A DNA stretch of 64,000 nucleotides from Aplysia californica (Eukaryota), in assembly GCF_000002075.1 (NCBI RefSeq), contig NW_004797437.1, positions 696,152-760,151 of the forward strand. Reading direction: 5' to 3'. Of the stretch, positions 13,101-43,900 are shown piece by piece (position 1 is the first letter of the stretch; every line of letters begins with the position of its first letter). The translations under genes were made by a program, and so were the position numbers. The notes beneath the pieces are model-generated. The model made no database searches. It saw only the letters and a list, made by a program, of their open reading frames with translations, and was not told the origin of the DNA.

Positions 13101-14000
13101 TCCGGTCACCAGGCCCGAGAAGTCCGCTGCAGTCACTCTCCTGACTGGATGACCAGATGGGGTATTTTGTACTGATGACGGTGTGATTGCAAAGTGTTTA
13201 AGAAACAGTGAGAGAAGGCAGAGGAAAGAACAATGAAAAAAAAAATAACGCTGAGAAGATGGGGATAGATTAAATCTATGGAAAATCTGTGACAAATGTA
13301 ACCCAAAAGGCTTTGAGATGGAATCTTTAGGGTCAGAGGAACAAAGGCCAAAACCAGCATGATGGAGAAAGGTGGAGGTAGAGATGCTGAGAAATTGAAC
13401 AAAATTTGGATACAGCTTGAAAAAGATGTTCAGAAAAGACAATATTTAAAGATAAATTTTCAGCATCCTATGTTTTTTAGGGAGTTACAAGACGAGAGAG
13501 AGAGAGAAGTGCCTATGCCCCCATCATCTGTCCACAGCATTAGATGAGTAGCCATGTTTTCCGTAAGCTGACAAAACGCCTTTTTCAATTTTAGCACCGA
13601 TATTTTTTATTTGCTAAATCCAAAGCCAGATCAGGTATCCTACTTGTGTGAAAAAATCAAATTGAAACTATAACTAGATTTTGAATAAATTAGTATTCAA
13701 ATTTCAGAATTACTCTATTTTTGAATGATTACGCTAACAAAAATCCTCTTTTTCTTGAAACTGCTCTGAAAGAAAAAAGGCATTTTGCCAGCTTACGGCT
13801 GATGTATCTGTGTACTTCAAATGCTTGTCTTTACCTATACCTTCAGCCTCACACTCACAATGTTTCTCGCTACCTCCCCAGATTTTGGTATGAAATGGGG
13901 TCTGGCGGAAGAGTTACCCACTGTGGACAGCAACTACAATGTGACCAGGATGAGGCACCCAAACTTTGATGACAGCGACGGCGGTGATGTCGTCTTTTAG
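2781..14000 (+). CDS. ARL13B: ADP-ribosylation factor-like protein 13B (ciliary GTPase), 9 coding exons, 2409 nt, 802 aa
   Basis: join(2781..2827,3301..3371,5087..5339,5868..5973,6509..6711,7200..7326,8965..10204,11195..11437,13882..14000). All introns GT-AG and phase-consistent. Motifs: P-loop GLDNAGKT, PTVGF, DVGGG (Gly in place of the catalytic Gln, an ARL13 hallmark), LANKVD, coiled coil ..EERKARVQRQREER, LPPLEPLG. Confidence 0.93.
3301..3371 (+). CDS. ARL13B: ARL13B coding exon 2 (P-loop, AITLAIIGLDNAGKTTLCSVFTG)
   Basis: cccccag acceptor, G|GTAAGA donor, G1 motif. Confidence 0.95.
4132..4557. mobile_element. MITE copy 1 (TIR ..GGTGGAAACAGGTGCTCGTCAA / TTGATGAGCGCCTGATTTCACC..)
   Basis: Terminal inverted repeats; homologous inverted copy at 14606-15058. 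Confidence 0.75.
5087..5339 (+). CDS. ARL13B: ARL13B coding exon 3 (switch I/II)
   Basis: APTVGF...FDVGGGKSIRPIWKTYF...GKPILV; gacag acceptor, GT|GTGAGT donor. Confidence 0.96.
5520..5700. repeat. (TG)n/(AG)n microsatellite; similar (CA)n tracts at 7034-7107 and 58985-59160
   Basis: Direct inspection. Confidence 0.95.
5868..5973 (+). CDS. ARL13B: ARL13B coding exon 4 (G4 NKxD)
   Basis: LANKVDKDDHLEEVDIVHGLKLEETAN; ttttag acceptor, GTCAGT donor. Confidence 0.94.
6509..6711 (+). CDS. ARL13B: ARL13B coding exon 5 (G5 and coiled coil)
   Basis: SALVGVGTKMDKELQDGLQWLL...REERKARVQRQREE; ccccag acceptor, AG|GTGACT donor. Confidence 0.94.
7200..7326 (+). CDS. ARL13B: ARL13B coding exon 6
   Basis: EKEEERERRRLG...DDDIVDGNPFKALD; cctcag acceptor, AAG|GTAAGC donor. 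Confidence 0.9.
7586..8636. mobile_element. Non-autonomous piggyBac-like element
   Basis: Perfect 13-bp TIR CTCATTCGCTACG/CGTAGCGAATGAG flanked by ATAA (7582-7585) and TTAA (8637-8640). Confidence 0.75.
8965..10204 (+). CDS. ARL13B: ARL13B coding exon 7 (1240-nt charged low-complexity exon)
   Basis: 425-aa ORF in track; ttccag acceptor in phase with exon 6; G|GTTTGT donor; contains LPPLEPLG. Confidence 0.85.
11195..11437 (+). CDS. ARL13B: ARL13B coding exon 8
   Basis: DFNSVRHSGQSETRRKKKKNLLRSNKLAPSDD..; tcacag acceptor, G|GTAAGC donor, phase 1-1. Confidence 0.85.
11713..11808. repeat. 24-bp minisatellite x4 (AGGCAWACTAAATACTGGTCTAAC), decaying into related repeats to ~12110
   Basis: Direct inspection. 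Confidence 0.85.
12117..12375. mobile_element. MITE with 17-bp perfect TIR AATTGGTCGCTTTTAAG
   Basis: 12117-12133 vs 12359-12375; extends imperfectly to ~34 bp. Confidence 0.75.
12685..13798. mobile_element. Two inverted copies of a ~235-bp MITE (12685-12916, 13561-13798; TIR CCGTAAGCTGACAAAA)
   Basis: Each copy has TIRs; the copies are reverse complements of each other. Confidence 0.75.
13882..14000 (+). CDS. ARL13B: ARL13B last coding exon
   Basis: FGMKWGLAEELP...RHPNFDDSDGGDVVF*; ctccccag acceptor, TAG 13998-14000; AATAAA at 14267-14272. Confidence 0.83.
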
Positions 14001-14605
14001 CACGTCACTTACACAGAGTCCAGCGGGGTGGATGATGTGTTTTTTCTGTGATAAACAAAAGGAGGACCCTCCAAACTGAAGACAACTTTACGGCTCATCC
14101 AACAAATTTTCATTAGAGCTTTGAGTTTTTGAAATTGTTCTTTTAGAGTCACTTTTTTTTTTGCTGTGCTGTTCAATCTGCTTTTTATGCAAAATTGTCC
14201 TTCTGGTATAAGGGAAGAGGAAACATTTTTTAAAAGTTATCTAGCGATAAGTCAAATGTTTACATAAATAAAGTTTATTTTTATAGTCCTCGCAGTGGAA
14301 CACGCTTTTTTAAAACGTTAGTCAGATAATTTTTTCAATGTTCAACAATTTACTACACATAATTTGTAAAAGAAGAAAAAAAATCCCATCCATTATCGTT
14401 CATATTTATGAAATAAAGAGTAATGAGGAGTTCTTGGAATATTTGTGAACTGGAAAATAATTTTTTCTGTTCCGGGTGATATTTAGGGCTAAAATTGCTC
14501 AGATTGAATGAGCTCTCTGGAGGGGAGGCTGAGAGAGTGAAAGTAAAATGCTCATTTGCTCAATTTGAGGGCACTTTGCTCATCCTCACTAAATAGTAAA
14601 ACTGA

Positions 14606-15058: not shown

Positions 15059-15719
15059 CATTGTGCCAGAGTGGAAATGGTACATCTCTGTGTTGGAGTG
15101 TGTCAATTGATTGTTAACCCTTTATTGCATAGTGTTGCCCTCAGGCAACATACCAAAATTAGAACTGCAGTTCCCAAAACTTTTCCATGGTTGTTTCCCC
15201 TGCTCTGAGTGTTTGAATTTGAAAGTAGTTAGTTTCCAGCAGTCTGACACCAGAGGCAATGCTTGGGTGCCCTGAGCCTTCGTTTACAAGCACTCTTTTG
15301 ACAAGAAGAATATCAGATGGAATGTTTCATACTACCATCAAAGCCATTAAGACTAAGACCATGTAGGAGACGATTTAGGAGAAAAAGAAGAAGATGGGCT
15401 GCTTTGGCTTGACCCTGCTTGTCAGGGACAAGCTGGGCTGAGTGGGGTATAACATCACAGCAGACAGATGGGCTGAGATACTCAATAAAATATCTTTCCC
15501 TCACAGATATCTTACTCATGTATTGTACATGCAAGGAGTATGTTGTAAAAGAAGTGGTATGTTGTTGAGTAAAGATCTAGGGGAAGACCGAGTGGAATCT
15601 GGAGAAAAATTACAGAAATTGATGTACAGAAAAGTGGGAAGACATGAAATAACATCACAAAAGGCTAGCCCAGATTAAAGAAAGGTGGAAAATGTTTGTT
15701 TGTGTCCTATACCCTGGTG

Positions 15720-16217
15720 CGGGGTGAGAAAGGCAATGGGGATGATGATTTTGTTGAGTGTTTACGAGTGCCTTCCAACGCTCACATATCTGTGCCAGAC
15801 ATGGTCCCTAACAAAAGCCCTAGAGAGGAAACTGGTCACATGTGAGATGAAATGCATAAGAAGAGCGGTCAACAGAACAAGAAGAGACAAAATTAAAAGT
15901 GAAGTCATAAGGGACACCGTGGGAGCAACACCAGTCCTACCACACATTGAAAAACAAGGTCAAGTGGTTCGGACACCTCAGGCGGATGCCCTCAAACCAT
16001 CCAGCTCTGAGAGCATACAACACTAAATATTCTGGATGGAGAGCCAGAGGAAGACCAAGGCGACGATGGAGTGAATCTGTGGCAGACACCCTTAGAGCTC
16101 ATGGGATGTCCCTCCTACAGGCCACATGACTTGCTGCAGACAGACGCCTGTGTCTCCCCGCAACACCCCAGGGTACAAGCGGAAGAAAAAAGTAAAAGTA
16201 AGCAAAGTAAAGTAAGT
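15720..16217 (+). mobile_element. RTE-clade LINE 3' fragment (frameshifted), (AAAGT)n tail
   Basis: PTLTYLCQTWSL..CEMKCIRR..TRRDKI / KWFGHLRRM..RARGRPRRRW is a typical RTE C-terminus; short-repeat tail 16189-16217. Confidence 0.85.
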
Positions 16218-28995: not shown

Positions 28996-31900
28996 TAAAC
29001 AAAACCAGGACAAAATAAATGGGAGAACTTTGTTCAGATAACATTATCACTTTCCCGTCCAGAGAGTTTTTCCACGTTTGTGCCTAGCCATCATCTTGTA
29101 CTGAGAATGAGAGGTAGGAAAAGGCTAAATACGAGAATGATTTCATCCCACCAATTTAGACCAATACATGTTTGCAATGTGAGGTTTAGACAACAGTTTG
29201 CATTGAAATATTTCATGGTGTGAATCTGATAGACCTTGAACACCCAGAGTTGAGCCATTGAACATCAACAATATATATAGCAGACTGGCATGGAAAGAGT
29301 CTACTGATCAGCAAAATGTAAGTAGGAAGCAACAAAATCAGTCTGAGATATTACCTTCTCCAATTCACATTGCAGCTGGAACATTTCCTTGTCCTTCCTC
29401 CGCGCCTCTTCCATGCACTCGTTCTTAATGGATTTGAGCATCGGCTGTGGAAGACAAGAAATTGAGTTTGAGTAAAAAGAAAGATGGACAGATAGAAAGA
29501 ATATAAGGGGGTAAAAAATAAAGGACCTACCAATGGCGCTCTCTGAACAACTCACTAGCTATAAGTCAAGAGAAGAAAAAAACCAACTTGGAGAAACTTT
29601 AGACCAGACACTATACCGCGAATGAACTGGGCAAAGATTACAGAAACTCAGAGGTATTGATAAGAACATGAAATATAGGATTAGCATTGTAGTAAAAGCA
29701 CAAGAAAAGTTTATATTCTATTTACACACGAAACCTCATTTTTCCGGTTAGGTTAGGTTTTACTAGAGGTTTTACGGGGCTCGCAAATGCATAAGGTCAT
29801 ATAAATGCCAAGGGGTGGATGTCAACAGAGAAGTCCTTACAGGGAATCACACTCTGCTCCCCTCTTTAGCTTCAACAGCACAAAGTCTGCTTCGACGACT
29901 ATCAAGGCACCCCGGAAATAGCGGGTCACAAGAGTGTGACAAACACACAAAAGAAGTTAGAGTAAAAAATGACGATAGTAAGGATTGGGAAAGAAAAAGC
30001 GGCAGTTCTCTGTTGCAGTTCAGGCAGTTATGAGCAAGACATCGATGGATCAGCCCATTTACAATTCTCTGTGCATAAGAACAGGTTAATATCCCCCCTT
30101 TGGGAATGGCCTAAACTTAAGCGTAAAGACACTTCAGTCAGTAGCACCGCCCCGGGGTAGGGGTGGGGGTATTTTCCTGTTATGAATCCTATCAAGTTAC
30201 AAAGAATTTATAATTTAAATACACAAAGATAAAACGTAAAAAGCACAACTGTATTCTTAATTGAAAATGGTGGAACTGTATGATGCACAATACTCCAAAC
30301 TTTTTAAGCAATGTGCAAAATCAAGGTAAACACAACAACCCCTCCCCAACCTGCAGTTGATCCAGAGCGACTGGGAGCAAGTTTTCTCTCAGTTGACTCA
30401 AAAGAGTGAGTAAACAGAGACTTTTGAGAAAAGGTGAAAAGAGATAAAGAAAGAAATTTATAACAATAGTCCAAACCTTGATGGTGCTTTCAAATTTGCC
30501 TACAATATCAGCACTGAAGCCAGCAAACAGCCGGAAGTCGATGCCGTTGGCAAGTTCTGCAGTCTCGGGCACCAGTTTCAACACGATGGCTAGTCTGTTA
30601 TATGTTGCCACTTCATTCTCAACCTGGTGGGTAGAAAACATACAAATACCAAGTGGTTAGTGAGCTTAGGCTCGCAACAAGGGTCAAGTGGTCACTGGGT
30701 GTGTCCTTGTGCAAGACATACATACCTGTTGTTATTGCTATGTTACAATGGTGTCCGCCTAACAGCAAACTCCTTAATAGGAAGCAAGCCTTGGTTGCTT
30801 TCAGGATGAGGTTGCTGCATACAGAATTTTCCAAAGGGGGTATCTAGCCCCCCATTTTTTATTTTTCAGCTTGCCACAACCGACGACCATGGGAAATGTT
30901 ACATCCAGAATCTAGATATCAGAGTGAAACTTTTTTTGTGAATGGCAAATTACCCTCAGTACTAGTATTGGTACCGGGGTGGCTACCTCAATTTTCTGTG
31001 CATTTTAAAAACTTTTGTACATTGGTTTATATTTTTTTATGAAACTGGTTTGTTTCTAAATGGGACAAGTCAAAGTAACTTACTAAAATTTCAAGATCTC
31101 TTGTTCTTTTATTCACTGAAGGAGAAATAAAACAGATTTGTTCCTACTAGTACAGAAGTATGAGGTTGAATGTGCCCCACCCCCCTATTGATTTTGGACC
31201 ACTTGTCCACACCCCCCTTTTATTCGATACTTTAGAGTGGCAGCATAGTAGATGAGGTTCCACAAGAGTGTGTCCTTCCTTTCAAGTAAACAGATGCTCA
31301 ATCAGGGCTCCCCTTTACGCACAAATGTGCATATATTACACATTAAACCTGCAGATTACCCCCCTTTAAGTTTTGGTTGTGCGTGAGCTTTACTCTTTAT
31401 AATTTATAATTTCATTTTGGGGGTTTGCATACGCTTTAAAACGTAGGTGGTGTGCGTCTGGCAAGCATCATTTCCCCCTTCTCTTTCCAAAAGCCGAGTC
31501 AATGATTTGACGACACACCCACACACATGAACGACAGTCACCTTCTGTGTCAGAAGAAGTCTACTAGTTGAGCTACTTATTCAGCAGCGCGCAGTTTCCA
31601 GCAACACAGGCATGCTTCAGCACAGAAGCTCCGCCCACATTCTGGTCGCTCACATTTCCCAGTGTTGTGCCTTGAGTTAACCCCTGCCGTGAGATTACCC
31701 CCATCCTTCTTTAACCCACTAGTAAACATGAATTGTCCGTCTTCGAAAGTGTGGAAAGACTGGAATGCGAACCCTGGGATGGCTTTGAAGAATAATGAAT
31801 CAGTTTATATTCCAAACCTGTCACTAATCCCTGCCCTAAATCTCAAGCATCCCGATTTTCCCCATTTTGATCTGCGTGTACTCTGATTTTTTTGTTAAAT

Positions 31901-34900
31901 TTTTTGTTCCGCCTGTTGCGCCGGATTTTTCTAAAATATTACTCTTGCCTTCTTTTCTGTCGTGGGAAGCACTCGTTAAACTTTTTGTCACCAAAAACTT
32001 GGGGCACTTTTTTCCAAAATGTCTATGTCGAATTTAGTAGTTGACTCACCAAAAGTTGTCTTGAATCTTTGCTCACACGTGTTATTTCAACTATAATGGA
32101 TTGAAAGTAGTAGTGATTTGGCATTCCGACTTAAGACATTCTCAAGATATACTTTCGCCAAAACATGCTTTGTCCAGTTTTGGTTAGTCGGGCCCGTCAT
32201 CAAGACCCGTCAGTAAAACTGTTTCAATCGTGCGTTTGCACCACGTGACAAGACTTGGCGTGTGAGTTCCGCGTGTGTCGGGGACCGTCATTGACAGGGT
32301 CAATTTAAGTTCTTGCACACTGATTGAAGAGTCTTTCTGGACTTATCCGAGGGGGGGGNNNNNNNNNNNNNNNNNNNNNNNNNNNNNNNNNNNNNNNNNN
32401 NNNNNNNNNNNNNNNNNNNNNNNNNNNNNNNNNNNNNNNNNNNNNNNNNNNNNNNNNNATCATCATCATCATCATTATCATTGCGTTTTTCACCATCCAC
32501 CAGGATATCTGCCACAAACAAACACCTTCCAGCCCCCCTCTCTTGGGCTTCCCTCTTGATGTTATTCCACGTGTTCCCAGTTGTCTGTACATCCAGTCTA
32601 CGATCTGTCACAATTATTGACACCCTCTCGCTTCTCAGTTTGTGATGACGTCATCTGTTTCTTCCACCAGTTGTGATGACGTCATCTGTTTCTTCCACCA
32701 GTTGTGATCGTCTGCTGCTGCCACGACTTCCGGGTGCCCAGAACGAGACATGAAATAGAAGAGAATTACCGGAAGTGCATGATGAACAAACAATACCTCC
32801 AGATCCTGGAGAGGAGGCCCGACGAGCTGCTTAGGAAGCAGCCAGGTAAGTTATAGGGGGTGTGTGCGTGTAAAACACTTGGACTAGGAGACCTTGACAG
32901 GATACTTCAGGATAAAAAAAAGATAAAAAACACACACACAGGCGCACGCACGCTCACACACATACACCACACACACACACGCGCGCAGAGGGAATATACA
33001 GTGGAAACCTAATATAACAGGGATAGCGGGACCAGAGAAAAAGTCCTGTTATATCAGATCCCTGCTAAATCAGAAAAGCAAGGGAAGTAAGCAATTGTGG
33101 GCTAATCCAGCTGTATTTATTCCCATGGCCTGCGCATGCCACATTACGCGTGCGTGTTGCTAGGTTTAGGGCTAGATCTAAGTCTACAGCACACCGCAAC
33201 CCCCTCTCGCTTCACCCGCTGTGGGTGTCTGTCCCTCTCTCTTACTTTTTACACATTGTTAAGGAGCCTGTCTCCCTGCTATAACCGATTGGGCTCCGAT
33301 GAGGCCCTGTTATTGCTGATAACTTTTAACAGAGACAAAGAGTAGGAAAAAAACGGGGATATAAAAAATCCCTGTTATTACCGGATCCCTGTCATTACCG
33401 GGCCGGTTATATAAATATATGGTTTCCACTGTACATGGATATAGTAATGGACACCCCTGGAATTTCGTAAAGTCAGCTTGGCAGTGACCTAAGTGATTTG
33501 TCGTTGATCCCAATTTTTTTCCCCACTGAGATCCTGACTTTTAGATATCACAGAGTGGCAGGTCTATTTTTCTTGGAGTATTATAGTCGGAGTTGACCCC
33601 TTTTGGTTTGTCAACTTTATTTCATTTTTGATAGACTCAACTGCTCAACCACTACCACTCTTCCCCCCTCCAAATGGACACAACTGTAATTCTAGTCAAT
33701 ATTACTCATTTATTTTTTAAGTTGATTAAAATCGTTAGCATTCAATCATAGTCATGGTCACTCTATGTGTGTCTGTGCGAATATGCTTGTGAGTAAAATG
33801 TTTGCAAGCAAAACAAATCTTACGATAAAATTATGAGATATTGACTCTTACCCTTTAAGTTTCTAAAACAAGGGTTTAAATACCCCTTAAAATAGTACAC
33901 CGAAGGGTGAAGGAACCTCTTAAATTGGCCTGAAAAGGGGAGCCCTGTCAATGACAGCTAAGATGTTACAATGTTATGCATGGTGGCCAAGACCTCCCCC
34001 CAAAGCCGGAGACTCTCAGGGCACATCCAAACACACTTACACATACTTACCTTTTCATTGACGTTGGACATATCCATGGACACCTTCCAGTTATCCGCAT
34101 CAATTTCCTCCACTTGCTTTTGCACCATCTCCACCTGCAGACGCAGACGAGCTTGCTCAGCCTTGAGACGGTCCACGTCGGAGGGGGTCAGGTCCTGGCA
34201 CTGGTAGATCATCTGCATCTCCGCCACACGCGCTTTCTCGGACTCCAGATCAGAGCCTGAGGGGGGTAAAAGCACACGGGCATCTCAGTAATTTAAATTT
34301 AAAACTAGAACTTAATTGCTATTACAAACACGATTTCACACAATATGGAAAAATAAACAATTTCTCATTCTCAATTTAAAGGGATCTTGCCCGTGAGATT
34401 GCTGCTGTAAATCTTTTTGTATAAATTATAAATATTTGGAGGGATAGACAGAGGACAAATTTCTTTAAAATTTGAAACTGTTTACTTCAACAAATGGGCT
34501 CTGGTTTTTCAAGTGTGGTCCCCAACAGTAACATATAAAAAAAAGACTCCTACTGCTTTTCTGGGGAACCCAGAGCGTAAGAATATTGTAGCAGCTAAAA
34601 AACTCTGAAGAACTGCACATTTTCATTTCACACTTTACTCAGCCTCATTATGAAACATTTTTACAGCTGTTTTCACCCCCGGGGCGGTGCCACTGACTGA
34701 AGTGTCTTTAAACCATTCCCAAAGAGGGGACATTTCTCGTTCTAATGCACATTAGAATTGTAAATAGGCTGATCCAACAATGTCATGCTCATAACTGTAC
34801 CTGAACTACAACAGGGAACCGCTGCTTTTTCTTTCCTAATCCTTACTATCGTTATTTTCCTCTACTTGTTTTGTATGTTTGTCACACTCTTGTGACCCGA

Positions 34901-37900
34901 TATTTTCAGGGTGCCTTGATAGTCGAAGGAGGCTTTGTGCTGTTGAAGCTAGAGAGGTGAGCAGAGTAAGCCTGATTCCCTGTAAGGACTTCTCAGTTGA
35001 CATCCACCCCTTGGCGCCCGTATGACCTTATGCAGTTGCAAGCGCCGTAAAACCTCTACTAAAACTAAACAACTGTTTTCTCTAAACTTATTTTTTTATC
35101 ATTATGCTATTTGAAGTGCTCAAGAAAAGTAAATCTTTTGAAATGAGCACCAAAAAAAATCAATTTTGAAAATGTTAATCTTCTGACAAGTTTTCTTAGA
35201 GCTACTCACAAATAAAAAATGGTGAAATGGTACAGGTTTAACGTCTCTAACAACACTATGAGCTTATTTAAGACGCGGTACCTCCCAGTTAAATGTCCAT
35301 TTCCAAAAGGACAGAGCCAAATAAGTTTTGTATAAAGTGCCTTTCCAGGACACAACATCAGACCAATCTGGGGCTAGAACCCCTGAGTCCGCAATCTTAC
35401 AATTATGGGTCCGGTACTGTAAGGTATCGAATACCCCCCCCCTTTAATAGTTTTAATTTATTTTGCCCCCCCCCCCCCCCCCCATTTCATGCTCCCCGTT
35501 AATTTTTTTCCAGCTTGTCACGACCTACGATCATGTGAAACATATCTAGAATCTAGATATCTGAATGAAACTTCTTTTTTTTGTGTGTAAATGGCAAATT
35601 ACCCTCAGTATTAGTACCGGTACCGGGTTGCTACCTCCATTTTCTGTGCATTTACGTTTGTACATTGGTTTATATTTTCTTATGAAACTGGTTTGTTCGA
35701 AAAATGGGAAAAGTCACAGTAGCTTACTAAAATCACTAAAATTTCACGATCTCTTGTCCTTTTATTCACTAAATGAGAAATAAAGCAGATATGCTCTTAA
35801 TAGTAGGGGTATAAGGTTGAATGTGCACCCCTCCCCCTCCGTTTATTAATTTTGGACCACTTGCCCCCCACCCTATTCGATACCTTACGGTAGGCTACCA
35901 ACGCCACCACTCATAAATAGAAAACAAACACAATCAGCCCACCTATGAGCATAGAAATGCATTATGTTGAATTACTGTCTCATAGCGCGACTAAGCTTGC
36001 CACCTCCAAACTAACATCACAGGACCACTCACTCAGCATTTTGCACGACTCTTCGCACTCGCTGAGCTCTGTGCTCACGGATCTCTTGAACTTTTCCAGG
36101 TTTTCCAAGTACTGTAACGTGGTCTGCTCATCCTGCTTGAGGCAGGCAATTCCCTCACGAAGCTTCAGAATCCACTCCTTAAGACGAAAAAAGATGTAAC
36201 AGAGAAATTTAAGACAATTGGACCACAAATTTCACTAGAAAAAAAAATTAAAATTAAAATTATGAATTAATCAAAAAGTACCCGTACCTCTCCCTAAAAA
36301 AAATTGTGAAAGAAGTATAAACATTGTTGGAACAAAGGGCATGACAAAGTGTTGACATGGCCTTTAAAAAATGGAAATAGCTCTTGACGCCGGTGTTTGT
36401 GGTGCAATGTTTGGCTCCTTGCCTTGGTAAACAAAAGACATGAGTTCAATTCCCATATGAAGAAGTTCATGCTAAACAGTTTCTTCATCCGTCTGCTGGG
36501 ACGATTCAACATTTTACCATCTGGCCTTACAATCTATCGATATGGCAGTCCTTGGTTTGTCCTCTGCACCTAAGAACATGAGAAAAGGTCACTGACAAGC
36601 AGTCTGCAAAGTTAAATTTAATATGTCTATAACCCCAGCAAAGTATTTCGAGAGGTGTCCAATTACCACAAAAACAAACAATTTAGCAATGCCAATCGGG
36701 CTTTCCTGTGCGGCGAAAATTTGGTCCCCGTTTGCGGGTGAATTTTTGGACTGTAGCATAAGAGACTAACTTTCTCAACCTCTGTCTGCACTATTTCTGG
36801 ACCAATGTCAATGATATGTGGACGTTGAAGTTTTTACTTACTCTGCTTACATTAGCTATTATCCTCTTTGCATAATTTTTTTGGGGTGCAAAAACTACCC
36901 ATCACTGGCAACTGTTGTTTTGGTCAACCGCCAACCTGGTAAAATTTTCCTACTCTCACCTCATTTTGCTCCACAAGCTCCAACTCACTCTCCAACCTAC
37001 GGTTTTCCTCAACCATAGACTCCATGTTTTCACCCTGATACTTCTGCTCTGAAACACGCAGAAAAATGCACATGCAAATAATTTAAAAATGAAAACAAAC
37101 ATTACAAATCAAGCACCATTGCTCTCTCAGAAAAAGGTACAAGCATCATTTTCCAGTAACTGATCACTGACATGGTTCTCATGCTAAGAAAACACAGAAC
37201 ATTCCACTCAGCAGCTTTCAAACTTTTGCTTCTACGCACTTGAACTCTCCCCCCCTCTCAACAAACAAACAAAAAACAAGCAACACACACAAAAAAAACA
37301 ACCAGTATGACTCTTGTGATAACAAGTACTTTTTCTTTTTGTACACATTTACACATGGGGGTCAGATTCAATTTTTAAACTGTGACGGTCTTCAGTAAAA
37401 TATCCAGTGACCCGCACACGGTCTTCAGTAATATGTCCAGTGACCGGTACAATCTCTCCTGGAGAGAAACAACGAAACAAGGGTTGGCCAAATCTCCTCT
37501 CAAACTTTTGGGTGTTTTCTTAGTTTGGTTTTAGTACAGCTTTTACGGCGCTCGCAACTGCATAAGGTCATATGAGCGCCAGAAGATTAGAGGTGTTACA
37601 AGAGAGTAACACACATAAAAAAGAACAAGGGAAGATAAGGACGATAGATGTTTGATAGGAAAGAAGGAGCAAACCGCACAAGAGCACCCGCCAACCACCC
37701 ACGGGGTGTTTTCTGAAGGTCTAAAGGACATGCTCAGCTGTCTGTTTGGTTTCTCTGCTAGGGCAAGGCAGCCAATAAGTAAGTTTGCCCTATCTGTGTG
37801 ATGTTTTACAGTTGAGTTTTAGTAAAGAGAAACACATCGAAACAATAATAGTCACATAGTGCAGGGAAGAAGCAAGACAGATAGACAGAAACTACAGAGG

Positions 37901-40900
37901 AAAAATAAAAGTAGGACCTACCAGTGGTGCTCTTCAACCACACTTATGTTCAACAGTCCAACTGACACAGAATCATAATCTACACATCTTTGCTGTCGCA
38001 AACAATCCATACAAGTCCAAATTTTGATAATTTTTTAATTTTTACACCCTCCTATTGCTCTAACAAAGGTGCACCATTCAACATAATCAAAATGCAGTTA
38101 AATGCTTGAGCTTATAATTTTCTTGCATTTCATGATTTCTGATAGGAACAACACTCAGGTGTAAAAAGTACCCAAACAGGCATAAGTGGATTGCTCGAGA
38201 CAGCAACGACACAGAACTACATACGGGGATGATAAGAAAAACGTTTTGTTTTTAATCCTAAACTCACAAAATTACAATTCAAAAAGCAATATTTCAGTCA
38301 CTAACATTATGAGAAATAAGTGATGTATGGCACAATTGTCAAATTATGATTAAAGGAAAAAAACCTCATAAAACCATGGATGAGCAGACTTTCATGAATA
38401 AACTAGTTAAACAGAGAGCATGCACGATAATCTTAAATGAACAATTCATGACCACAATTAACAGTAATACTTACTAAGTAGAATGCGTAAGTCATTGTCA
38501 AACTCTTCAAATGTGTCTGCTCCACGCATGAAAGCAGCATAGGTTCCCTCACAATACTCGTATACAGTCTGCATAGAGAAAATAGTTAACTTAGATGTAA
38601 CATATGACTGAAGATCAAGTTATTCATATCTTCCGCGTTCACAAAATCCTGTTCCATGACTGACATACAAAGCAACAGAAAGAACTGATTCTCATTTCCG
38701 GGTAATATTTTCAAAGCATCTAACCAGTCATAAAATCTGTGCTTCTTTTGCAAAATAACACAAGCATACTCCTGTCTAATGTTTTCACAAAACCTTGCCT
38801 AACAGCAGTGTTTCCGTTCCAAATTTAATTAGAAAAACTTTTGAGCTTGAGTAAGGAGATTTTTTAGTTTAAGCAGAGGTTTTACTGCGCTCGCAACTGC
38901 ATACGGTCATATGAGCGCCAAGGGGGGGATGTCAACAGAGAAGTCCTCACAGGGAATCAGACTTACTCTGCTCACCTCTATAGCTTCAACAACACAAAGT
39001 CTGCTTTGACTATCAAGGCACCCCGGAAATAGCGGGTCACAAGAGCGTGACAAACATACAAAAGAAATAGAGGAAAATGACAATAGTAAGGATCTGGAAA
39101 AAAAAAAGCAGCAGTTCCCTATTGTAGTTCAGGCACAGTTATGAGCATGACATTGTTGAATCAGCCCATTTACAATTCTACTCTGCATAAGACCATGTTA
39201 ATATCCCCAGGGAATGGCCTAAAGACACTTCAGTCAGTGGCACTGCCCCAGGGGGTGTTGAGTAAGGAGAAGCACATCAACACAGCAATTATCTTCAAAA
39301 GCCTAAAACGTGTAGAAAACAACATAAAGATAAAATAAACACATAAGAGATAACAAAAGTGAATTGAAAAAATTCACAAGATAGGACAAAGAGAGAGTGA
39401 CATGAATACAGAAGATGAGAAAAATACTGTATTCAACATAAATGCATAATGAGATGAGAAATACAGTGAGCAACATGAATACACAAGATGAGAAATACAA
39501 AGAACAAAATAAATTCACCAGATGAGAAAAACAAATAACAGATTATATAAATATGTACCTGATCTTCTGACTTCACATCAAACTCCTCTCCATTGGCATC
39601 CCCAAATATAAATGCATCAATTCCTCCTTGACTGGGGATGTTACCTGCCATCTGGAGAAGCATGGAAATCCTTGTCATTTCATGAGAAAAAGCAAACCCA
39701 AACTAAAGCTGGCTAAAATCTTGAGCACTTACCAGTGTCGTGTTACATTCCTTTCCTTTCTGTACGCTTTTACTTTTAGGGGACAGATCTCGGGAAACAA
39801 AGGGCTGAGAAAATCCTGACATCAAAGGAAGTTTCCTTGTTATCCAAGTGTTGCATTTGATGATGTTCTTGACTGTCTGTTGTGATACTGGGTATTAGAT
39901 ATTGTGAATCATGTACCAATAGAAAATTATTTGCGTATTTCTGCATTGTACGAGAACTAGCCATTGTAATCCAAATTATCCCATTGGGATCAATATAAAT
40001 GGGTTTTAAGGGAGTTTTAAAAAAAGGATTTCCGCAGTACAAAAAGGTACCTCGATGAGATCGAGCATCCAAATGAGAGCACCAAGCAAGTGTGGCCAGG
40101 TATGAGGACTCCCCACAGAGTAAAGGTACGTCTTCGACAAACTGAAAGGGTATGCCATCATCTTGAGCACCCGAGGCACCTCTTCCTCCATCTTTGTAGC
40201 CATCTTGTAGCCAGGATGAAGCTTGCTGTAGATAAACTGGAAAAAAGAATGCAACAGAAGGAGGATAAAGAATTTTGGAGGACATAACTCTGGCTCTGGC
40301 TGAAGGAAAGAAACAAATAGCTTAGGTTTCTTAAGTACAAGAGAAAAGGTAAGGATGGATATTTACGGGGGAGGGAATTTAGCCCTTTCAACACCATAAC
40401 GATGTTTCTGATATGTCAAACAATTTCAGATTCTTCCACAGCTTGACGTACCGGGGAAAGCAAAAGACATAATATTGAAAAGGTTAACTTTTAACTTCAG
40501 CTCAGGAGTGTTTAACAAACAAATTACTGATGAGTGACATAAAAATGAAACGATAATTACTTTTGAAAACTTAGAAGAAGCGCAAACTGGGTTTTTTTAA
40601 TATACATCAAATTTGTAGCCCTTTACCTATAACCTGTGCTTCCACCACCAGCTGAAGCTGAAAAGTAAGGAAAATTCTGCAGGGGGTCCAGGGGGCTAAG
40701 CGCCCGAAGAAAATGAAATTTATTGCTTTTAGAGGGTTGAAAATGGCATTTGGGAGCCTGTTAGAAGAGATTGCCTGCAAACCATAACATTTATTTTTTC
40801 ACCAACATTTTGTCCTGTTTCATTTCTTCACCAAGATCTACATAATATATTTCCATTGATGGCTATGTTTAAAAGCAGGTTCCCCTTCAACTGCTACTAT

Positions 40901-43900
40901 ATTTTAATTAATTTGTCATCGCACCATTGAAAGAAGGCCAACCTGGGTATAATGAATAGATATGTACCTTCACAATAGTTACCCGGCGTATACCCTAATT
41001 TTTCTTAAATTTCACGCCTGAATGTCGCATATCACAACCTCGGAATCCCACTTCAAATTATTCTTGACTTTAGTAGTTTTAGGCTGGTTTTAGAATAAAT
41101 TTCTTTCATCGTGGCCCTTATCACGTTTCCGTGCCGTAAAATCTTCGTATTGATCATTTCTCTAGATCTAGAAAAATTTGTAAAAAAGTTTCTTTCTGAC
41201 AGTAATTTTCTGGCTAAGATCACAAGTCAATTTACTTGATCAACGCACAGATCTTCCAGCCGCGGCAACAATCCGAAGATAGACAGACGGAATGAGGGAA
41301 TGATAGAAAGGAGGAAATTGGCACAAAAAGTTCGCCAGATTTTGATCAACCTACAGGTAAAAATGTACTGCCAACAAGCCAGCAATGAATGCATGGGGCA
41401 TAGCGGAATAATGGCCAATTGCAGGAAATGCGCCATCTGGCCGGTTTCTATAACATTAACTTATTACAGAGAGAATTACCATAAATATCCGTAACTTATA
41501 CTAGTACTAGACGATACGAAGGCGAGTACGGATCTTTTGCTACGGAATTTCGGTAGTCCTACTCTGTGGCAGCTTTTTACGGACGGAGTTGAAAAAGATG
41601 GAGGAACAAGTACGGAATTGGCAGAAAGTACGGATTTCCGTAAAAATACGGAAGAGTGGAAGCACTGTATAACAAAAGCTGTTGCCATTTCAATTCAAGG
41701 TAACCTTTGATGCCCACAAACTTATTCTTACAGATTAAGCATCTCTTGGCCATAGCTAGCTGTAACTGTAAATTAAAAGAGTGGGTCTCAGTTCCACAAA
41801 GACATTCTTTTAAATTTAAGTTACAAGAAAAAATAATAGTTATAGTTACATTGACGGCAACCTGCATAGAAACACAAAAGATTCTGTTTTCCTGTTTCAA
41901 TAATTAGAGGGATGGGAAAGGTAGAAAAGTCACTAATCAAAGCAAATGATAGAAGAAAAATACTCACAGCAAAAATCTTGAAGAAGTCCTTGCTTGTTGG
42001 AGAAACCAACAGTTTTTGCGAGACAGCATGAGGATAGTTGTTGGCCATAAGAAACTGAAACAGTTGCAATGAATTCTTCATGAGGTCAAAAGAGAATAAA
42101 AAGAGAAAAGCATACAAATCAATTTTTTTTAAACCTCTTCCATTAGAAGTATCTATATTCTATCAGAGGTAACAATGTCCCATCAGAACAATATTCTATC
42201 AAAGGTTACAATAATCCATTTAAAATAATAAAATATTCCATTACAAGTAACAGTATTACAGGAGCATTAACATTCTGTTGAAATAATTCTATCAGAGGTA
42301 ATCAGGAAACCAGCATTTGATCAGAAACAATATGTTCTTTTTCAAGTAACTTTATCAAAAGTAACAATATTCTATTAGAGGAACGTGTATTCTATCACAA
42401 ATAACAGCATTCTGTGAGAAGTAACAAAATGTTAATCTATGAAAGTCAACAAAGATTTTAAATTCAAATGTGAAGAAAAAGCCTGGTTGTAACATACGTG
42501 AACTATTATGTCTAGATTTCTTGAGCACGCATACCTCTAGTAACTGCCTTATACATTGATTGTGGTACTTTTTGTCAGAAATGGGACGTGGATCTTTCGG
42601 AACATCTGTCCTCCCACGAACTCCAATTCCACTTGAAGGACGTCTGTGTTTTAAAAAAAAACTATTTTAAACAACCCCACATATTAATGGTTAAATGGTG
42701 AAATGGTATAGGTATTTACGCCCCCTATCAACACTGTTAGGTTATTTAAGAGGCGGGACCTCAGAGTACAACATCCAACTCCGAAAAAACAGAGCAAAGT
42801 GGGAAATTTGTGTAAAGTGCCTTTCCTAAGGATACAACATCGGACCGAGCTGAGGCTCAAACCCCCCCCCGAACCCACAATCTCATGATTACGAGTCCGG
42901 TACCCTAGCCTCTAGGCCACCGACGCTACTACATTTTAATAGAAATCCTTAAATTAAGTTGCAAAAACTGACAGGATCAGGTGCCAAAAACTTTTGAACA
43001 GCTGTACCTGACACTGATAAATGTCGCGTGCACAAAGCGAACAAAAGAATAAAAGATATAAGACAAACAAGTGTTGAGATACAAACTTATAGATGTAGGT
43101 AAAAGCATGCATGGTGAGAACCCTAAAAATCACATTGTACTCGTACCATGCAGATATCCTTTCTTTAGCCAAAGTGACTCTCACGGGTGTCTAAAAATGA
43201 GTACATCTCTAACTCTGATAAGTCTCTGATAAAGACAGAAGTTTGTTGTCAATGATTAATGGATTTAATAAAAACAAGTCACTGAAAAGGAAGGACAGAC
43301 AGAATGATCAAAGGAATGAATGAATCTGAGGGCACAGCCATGGGACAAAAAGACTGATCTTCTCTCACCGATGGAAGCGCAAAATTTGTCAGTCATTCGC
43401 AATCCATAGCTCTTAGGTGACATTCATACTTTTCAGCCATATTCTAAAAGTAAGTTATTCACTAATACATCCATAAATACTTCCACCTGTCTTTAATCAA
43501 TTATAATTAGTGTGATGTAATGCTTTGTGTAATGACAGATGGCAAGTTGGTAAAACCGACACATTTATTCTACTCTATTCTGTACATTGTTTTGTCTGTG
43601 CAACATCTAGGGATGGTACAGAAAAAAAACTCCCAACAAATCCCCCAGATACTTTTCTCAACATGAACTCCATAACAACCAAGCTGTAATAAAAGCTTGA
43701 ACACTGAATGGAAGCAACACAATTACATGACCTAGAAAAAGAAAAATAATAAAACATAATATTTTCTGTAAAATCTTTTACGCAGCATCAATTCTCCTTG
43801 ACCACAATTTCCCATCATCTTACATTGCTGTGTAAAACCAGTACTTTCCTTACCCCGATTTAGGCAAAAAAGACAACTGACTTCCTCCAGGCTTGTAACT

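Follow-up and report, generated by a model that had tools for sequence, protein, structure and literature searches.

A conserved TMIE exon lies antisense within an NDC80 intron in the draft genome of the sea hare Aplysia californica

TMIE is required for the function of the TMC mechanosensory channels, and Aplysia californica, whose statocysts contain hair cells, is a classic model animal of neurobiology. In the 927-Mb draft assembly of this species (RefSeq GCF_000002075.1), a stretch of 64,000 nucleotides (nt) from contig NW_004797437.1 (positions 696,152–760,151 of the forward strand; hereafter the window, numbered from its first letter) carries a short TMIE-like exon on its plus strand (32702–32845), within an intron of the minus-strand gene NDC80. 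The question raised by this locus is whether the exon belongs to an intact TMIE gene that truly resides inside NDC80, or whether it is a duplicated copy, a decayed remnant, a product of faulty assembly or a chance reading frame. It is close to certain that the exon is a true piece of the sea hare's only TMIE gene, an identification that rests on its match to the protein family, its uniqueness in the assembly and an exon start and size in common with other gastropods.

Sequence and family identity of the exon

A first-pass annotation, made from the letters of the window, had described a 144-nt open exon of phase 1-1 with strong splice sites. Reading of the sequence and translation from 32704 confirmed this description and reproduced the quoted 47-residue peptide. 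The frame comprises 47 stop-free codons, preceded by TT and followed by a single G, so that both flanking introns are in phase 1. The acceptor (ctgtttcttccaccag|TT at 32701/32702) has a pyrimidine tract and ends in CAG at 32699–32701, and the donor (CCAG|gtaagt at 32845/32846) matches the full consensus. The exon had also been said to be absent from the list of open reading frames; this is correct at the default threshold of 60 amino acids (aa), but at a threshold of 35 aa the frame is listed as a GTG-started open reading frame of 50 aa (32704–32856).

32702–32845, plus strand: TMIE coding exon 3 (144 nt, phase 1-1; translation, Pfam PF16038, genome-wide uniqueness, and the exon start and size of relatives)
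32846–32851, plus strand: donor GTAAGT of TMIE intron 3 (consensus, from reading of the sequence)

Against the Pfam TMIE family (PF16038; gathering cut-off, 27 bits), the 47-aa peptide scored 37.6 bits (E = 1.9e-9) over profile positions 28–63 of 85. With this match above the cut-off, a juxtamembrane Cys cluster and an R-x-P-R-T-R elbow, the TMIE identity that had been proposed for the exon is borne out. A profile built from ten gastropod TMIE proteins matched the exon at 92 bits (E = 2e-23). A protein-library search with the peptide returned 18 relatives (best identity, 70%, to Physella), from the gastropods Physella, Bulinus, Biomphalaria, Plakobranchus, Elysia, Batillaria, Lottia, Candidula, Babylonia and Gigantopelta, several of which carry the name 'transmembrane inner ear expressed protein'; a word-based protein search, which covers proteins of 26–82 aa only, gave no match. 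Gastropod TMIE orthologues have thus already been named in other species, and the exon is an unremarkable piece of an orthologue in a draft assembly. Among the literature titles listed for TMIE in molluscs or Aplysia, none was relevant.

A six-frame search of the whole assembly with the Pfam TMIE profile recovered the exon (41.4 bits, E = 8.8e-8) as the sole match above the cut-off, and no other place exceeded 20 bits. At the DNA level, a search of the assembly with positions 32560–32900 found the self-match alone as far as 32855, the start of a short repeat. The first-pass annotation had allowed for a duplicated or transduced pseudo-exon, which an intact, near-identical TMIE locus elsewhere would have indicated. 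No such second locus was found in the assembly by either protein or DNA search, the exon start matches that of the relatives' annotated genes and its divergence is ortholog-like, and a pseudo-exon is therefore disfavoured. The exon was also recovered outside the reference assembly, in what is probably a DNA run, from another haplotype (~1% different nearby), where a 173-nt contig over 32679–32851 carries it.

Conserved residues

From the last turn of the transmembrane (TM) helix, the product of the exon runs through the Cys cluster and the elbow into the cytosolic helix. The peptide aligns to residues 41–68 of Caenorhabditis elegans TMIE (PDB 7USW chain D, from the TMC-1 complex); the direct match to this chain, at 13.8 bits and E = 0.68 in a search against the PDB, is weak. 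TMIE in this complex consists of a single membrane helix, an elbow and a helix in the cytosol; Cys44, at the cytosolic edge of the membrane, carries a palmitoyl group, and Arg49 and Arg52 (the deafness sites R81 and R84 of human TMIE) form hydrogen bonds with TM6 and TM8 of TMC-1 (PMC9605866). Three consecutive Cys codons occupy 32713–32721 of the window, and the middle one aligns to worm C44. By this alignment, the exon holds the juxtamembrane cysteine of the TMIE family, at a position matching the palmitoylated worm residue, and has retained the elbow arginines that contact TMC.

32716–32718, plus strand: Cys codon aligned to worm C44 (alignment to 7usw_D; role of the residue from PMC9605866)
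32731–32742, plus strand: R-V-P-R elbow, aligned to worm R49-I-P-R52 (Arg codons at 32731–32733 and 32740–32742)
32749–32751, plus strand: CAT (His) where the family has a near-invariant Gln (T>G at 32751 in the independent DNA run, giving CAG, Gln)

Fifteen of the 17 gastropod TMIE positions in the exon that are invariant or nearly so are retained; the other two are an invariant Arg that is replaced by Cys (32776–32778) and the near-invariant Gln that is replaced by His (32749–32751). As the independent DNA run restores Gln at the last of the codons listed above, site 32751 (T or G) is either a polymorphism or a base error in the assembly.

Compared with C. elegans TMIE (7USW), equivalents of Cys44, Arg49 and Arg52 are present in the exon, whereas the readable window lacks the membrane helix that bears the TMC-1-contacting Trp (W25 in the worm, W57 in human). 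Vertebrate TMIE (the deafness gene DFNB6) shares the Pfam family and the C-R-V-P-R-T-R elbow, but differs in the sequence of the cytosolic helix and in a Lys-rich tail that was not found here, with the reservation that no vertebrate sequence was directly compared.

Exon structure and divergence among gastropods

Gene structures were derived for three relatives by mapping the proteins of Physella, Biomphalaria and Bulinus to their loci, with reading at base level in Physella and by protein alignment in the other two. TMIE has four coding exons in each of these snails, and exon 3 (144–147 nt) has the same start as the window exon. In Physella this exon begins at cag|TTGTGAT, with an acceptor base-identical to that of the window, and ends one base into a codon before GTAA. 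The boundaries and phases of exon 3 are therefore conserved between the sea hare and Physella, and the Biomphalaria and Bulinus alignments agree, which is evidence against both a retro-copy and a chance frame. Human TMIE exon 3, we take it, also begins with a phase-1 intron, three codons ahead of the CC pair.

Non-synonymous divergence between the window exon and the three snails (0.19–0.27) falls in the same range as that between Physella and the two planorbids, and synonymous sites are saturated. An ortholog-like non-synonymous range beside saturated synonymous sites indicates that the exon has been under protein-level constraint for most of its history.

Over the exon, identity ranges from 52 to 70% across five gastropod orthologues, those of Physella acuta (LOC131950170), Bulinus truncatus (Btru_001151), Biomphalaria glabrata (LOC106073812), Plakobranchus ocellatus (GFN86816.1) and Elysia chlorotica (RUS69852.1), with the motif CCC-x-D-F/Y-R-V/I-P-R-T/S-R and the helix that follows it in common. 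The relatives differ from the sea hare locus in that their genes are compact (3.3–9 kb) and in that all five proteins have a Trp-His TM segment and a C-terminal T-P-L-A motif, neither of which was found in the window.

Position within NDC80

As assembled, the exon lies wholly inside an NDC80 intron of 3.4 kb (30624–34050), with NDC80 on the minus strand and the exon on the plus strand. This antisense position, which had been proposed in the first-pass annotation, holds: the loop exon and the calponin-homology exons of NDC80 flank the exon on the minus strand and in the right order.

30477–30623, minus strand: NDC80 exon of the loop region, bordering the host intron on its 3' side (Pfam NDC80_loop, 29.2 bits; 27.1 bits genome-wide; splice sites)
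34051–34258, minus strand: coiled-coil exon bordering the host intron on its 5' side; donor, AAG|GTAAGT (position and strand are the sole grounds for its assignment to NDC80)
40048–40248, minus strand: NDC80 calponin-homology (Ndc80_HEC) exon (81.4 bits)
41968–42069, minus strand: second NDC80 calponin-homology (Ndc80_HEC) exon (29.1 bits)

The coiled-coil exon at 34051–34258 had no family match, and a PDB search with it gave no match to NDC80. Antisense nesting of genes in introns is common. As the other TMIE exons are unlocated, a fully nested layout and an interleaved one are both compatible with the position of exon 3. The presumed TMIE intron 3, downstream of the exon, contains a discrete repeat.

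32997–33437, no strand assigned: ~440-nt high-copy repeat in the presumed TMIE intron 3 (many copies with the same ends; high read depth)

More than 2000 candidate copies of this repeat occur in the genome (2132 at first look), with ~75–91% identity and sharp ends, and it looks SINE- or MITE-like (short interspersed nuclear element; miniature inverted-repeat transposable element).

The duplicated acceptor

The acceptor of the exon is part of a short tandem array, identified with Tandem Repeats Finder (TRF) and absent from the first-pass annotation.

32640–32701, plus strand: two perfect copies of a 31-nt unit with ATGAC, a pyrimidine tract and the acceptor AG (TRF: period 31, 2.2 copies, 100% matches)

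A third, partial copy of the unit (7 nt, TTGTGAT) forms the start of the exon, such that the array as a whole spans 32640–32708. The ATGAC of the unit fits a branch-point consensus, and Physella has a similarly spaced equivalent. The unit also holds a 12-nt palindrome, GATGACGTCATC, with a core, TGACGTCA, that resembles a cyclic AMP response element (CRE). Of the two duplicated acceptors, the proximal one is presumably used. In the independent DNA run, the contig of 31-mers begins exactly at 32679, the first non-repeated 31-mer of the array, suggesting that a second animal also carries the duplication, as a de Bruijn graph would then break at this position.

In Physella, part of the membrane-helix sequence of exon 2 is repeated in tandem within TMIE intron 2, ~65 nt past the exon (locus positions 13292–13345). 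TMIE intron 2 thus seems prone to local duplication in two lineages.

Completeness of the gene and alternative explanations

Interpreted together with the relatives, positions 32702–32845 would be exon 3 of a single gene for TMIE, a small protein that crosses the membrane once and is located next to TMC mechanosensory channels. Of this protein, the exon would supply the end of the membrane helix on the cytosolic side, the cysteine lipidated in the worm, the arginine elbow that would grip TMC helices 6 and 8, and the cytosolic helix. A working protein would need splicing to an upstream exon for the Trp-His membrane helix, most likely in a nearby assembly gap, and also to a downstream tail exon that may have diverged or been missed by the searches. 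We consider it likely that an intact TMIE gene of this kind truly resides inside NDC80, with exon 2 in the gap and exon 4 diverged or evading the searches; such a gene would presumably be expressed.

32359–32458, no strand: 100-N assembly gap, 244–343 nt upstream of the exon (candidate site of the TM-encoding exon 2)

The gap had been noted at ~240 bp upstream of the exon, and its near edge is indeed 244 nt away. Intron 2 measures 374 nt in Physella, ~900 nt in Bulinus and ~1140 nt in Biomphalaria, which makes the gap a sensible site for exon 2 if its true size exceeds ~120 nt. That the TM-encoding exon 2 is hidden there is plausible, if unproven.

Several observations weigh against an intact gene at this position. 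Exon 2, which is strongly conserved in the relatives (I-E-x-E-x-L-G-P-L-R-x-W-H-I, then the membrane helix), was not found in the readable window (hidden Markov model of the N-terminal block, tblastn, regular expressions and three-frame reading) or in the assembly (ten-protein profile, degenerate DNA pattern and three-snail exon-2 profile). Exon 4, recognisable in the relatives by the motif T-P-L-A-x-H/N-P-x-D-L-L (kept in most aligned gastropods, weakest in Lottia), was found neither in the window, including the 29 kb of gap-free sequence downstream, by profile, tblastn, motif or three-frame reading, nor in the assembly, by a genome-wide exon-4 profile and a motif pattern. The unique island around the exon is only ~400 nt long and lies between the gap and repeats. 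None of Physella, Biomphalaria, Bulinus, Plakobranchus and Elysia has TMIE inside NDC80; the gene stands by itself there, among other neighbours. Three raw poly-A RNA runs labelled with the same species had zero depth at 32600–32799, a result that is uninformative given that the NDC80 exons are equally silent. Within the exon, the codon at 32776–32778 is TGC (Cys), at a position that is Arg in all ten aligned gastropod TMIE proteins. The duplicated acceptor, too, could mis-splice: use of the upstream AG (32670/32671) would add 31 nt, shift the frame and lead to a stop after 26 codons.

The exons were searched one by one, and the sensitivity for short exons and motifs in a 927-Mb draft is uncalibrated. 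When the window was compared with the loci of the five relatives (tblastn, blastn and tblastx), exon 3 alone matched; the neighbours of TMIE differ among the five relatives too, so that missing synteny is weak evidence. Over 30200–36199, the three RNA runs covered the repeats alone and had zero reads on all NDC80 exons there; the tissue sampled was probably non-dividing, and the runs are unsuited to testing the genes of this locus. The absence of exon 4 is harder to account for. No gap explains it, and, with an intron 3 of 0.7–1.45 kb in the relatives, it is a real puzzle.

Each candidate for a missing exon was rejected. For exon 2, the candidate at 14430 has too few invariant residues, that at 16017 falls within the reverse-transcriptase tail of a long interspersed nuclear element (LINE), and a hydrophobic run of Ile immediately past the gap stems from an ATC microsatellite and lacks a donor in phase; when the sequences flanking the gap were aligned locally at the DNA level, no exon-2 remnant was seen. 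In the genome-wide searches, the matches to the ten-protein profile on C18, C997 and C958 are unrelated, and the match to the degenerate pattern on C338 has no membrane helix behind it. The three-snail exon-2 profile gave two matches, both with E > 2, and the candidate at C50:46385–46435 (minus strand; 18 bits, E = 2.45) is indistinguishable from chance and has no good splice sites. The exon-4 motif pattern gave two one-mismatch matches genome-wide, against six in a reversed control, and the match on C251 is in the wrong frame of a Pro/Tyr-rich gene.

The failure to find exons 2 and 4, the confinement of the unique island between the gap and high-copy repeats, and the lack of nesting in five relatives would share one cause if the exon were real and the local assembly wrong or incomplete, either with the ~400-nt island joined through repeats to the NDC80 intron or with exons 2 and 4 collapsed or unassembled, and the layout were thus an artefact. 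The gap flanks are of low complexity (a G run and the ATC microsatellite), as is typical of assembly breaks. We regard such a fault as somewhat unlikely, since no Ns separate the island from 30 kb of contig with the NDC80 exons in order, the adjoining 440-nt repeat is discrete and clean-ended, as in a normal intronic insertion, and microsynteny around TMIE varies among the relatives themselves. It is quite doubtful that TMIE was instead remodelled in this lineage, having moved into the NDC80 intron, lost the tail exon that most gastropods keep and perhaps come to be gated by the duplicated 3' splice site; if this were true, use of the upstream acceptor, which shifts the frame into a stop, could switch productive splicing on and off or leave a mechanotransduction subunit naturally hypomorphic.

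Decay of the gene, in which TMIE was broken up in the lineage and exon 3 is the last recognisable and non-working piece, is very improbable with 47 open codons, two splice sites of consensus strength, the 15 of 17 conserved positions and an amino-acid divergence no higher than that among functional orthologues. To our knowledge, TMIE is retained across bilaterians that possess TMC channels, which was also counted against decay. A relic would fit with the failure to find exons 2 and 4 anywhere in the assembly, itself tempered by the uncalibrated searches, and with the change of an invariant Arg to Cys, the His of the reference allele at a near-invariant Gln position, the frame-shifting duplicated acceptor and the zero RNA reads on the exon. 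Little need be said for a chance open frame unrelated to TMIE, for which short length is the sole point in favour: with E-values from 1e-9 to 1e-23, a snail TMIE that is 70% identical, and agreement with the relatives in where the exon starts and how long it is, its probability is negligible.

The exon is a useful flag for the annotation and assembly of a model organism's genome and not a new kind of biology. With the Aplysia gene visible as one exon in the assembly, gene catalogues will probably miss or truncate TMIE, and work on mechanotransduction in this species needs cDNA or long reads for the full gene.

Other features of the window

The first-pass annotation had placed the ciliary gene ARL13B upstream of the TMIE exon on the same strand. 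An Arf-family gene is indeed present upstream on the plus strand (exon 4972–5343, followed by a long, charged open frame), but it fits ARL13B about as well as ARL3.

A C-terminal fragment of a LINE reverse transcriptase lies at 15685–16100 on the plus strand and was the source of a false match with the N-terminal end of one snail TMIE. Outside the window, the minus-strand frame at C50:46385–46435 is a 19-aa open frame with L-L-R-Y-W-H and a hydrophobic run, has nine of 11 invariant exon-2 residues and sits on an island of ~1.8 kb between runs of N. A very high-copy element at 34800–35200 has abundant transcripts from both strands, with many reads entering poly-A at 35053–35069, and may thus represent a SINE-like family that is still active or was so until recently.

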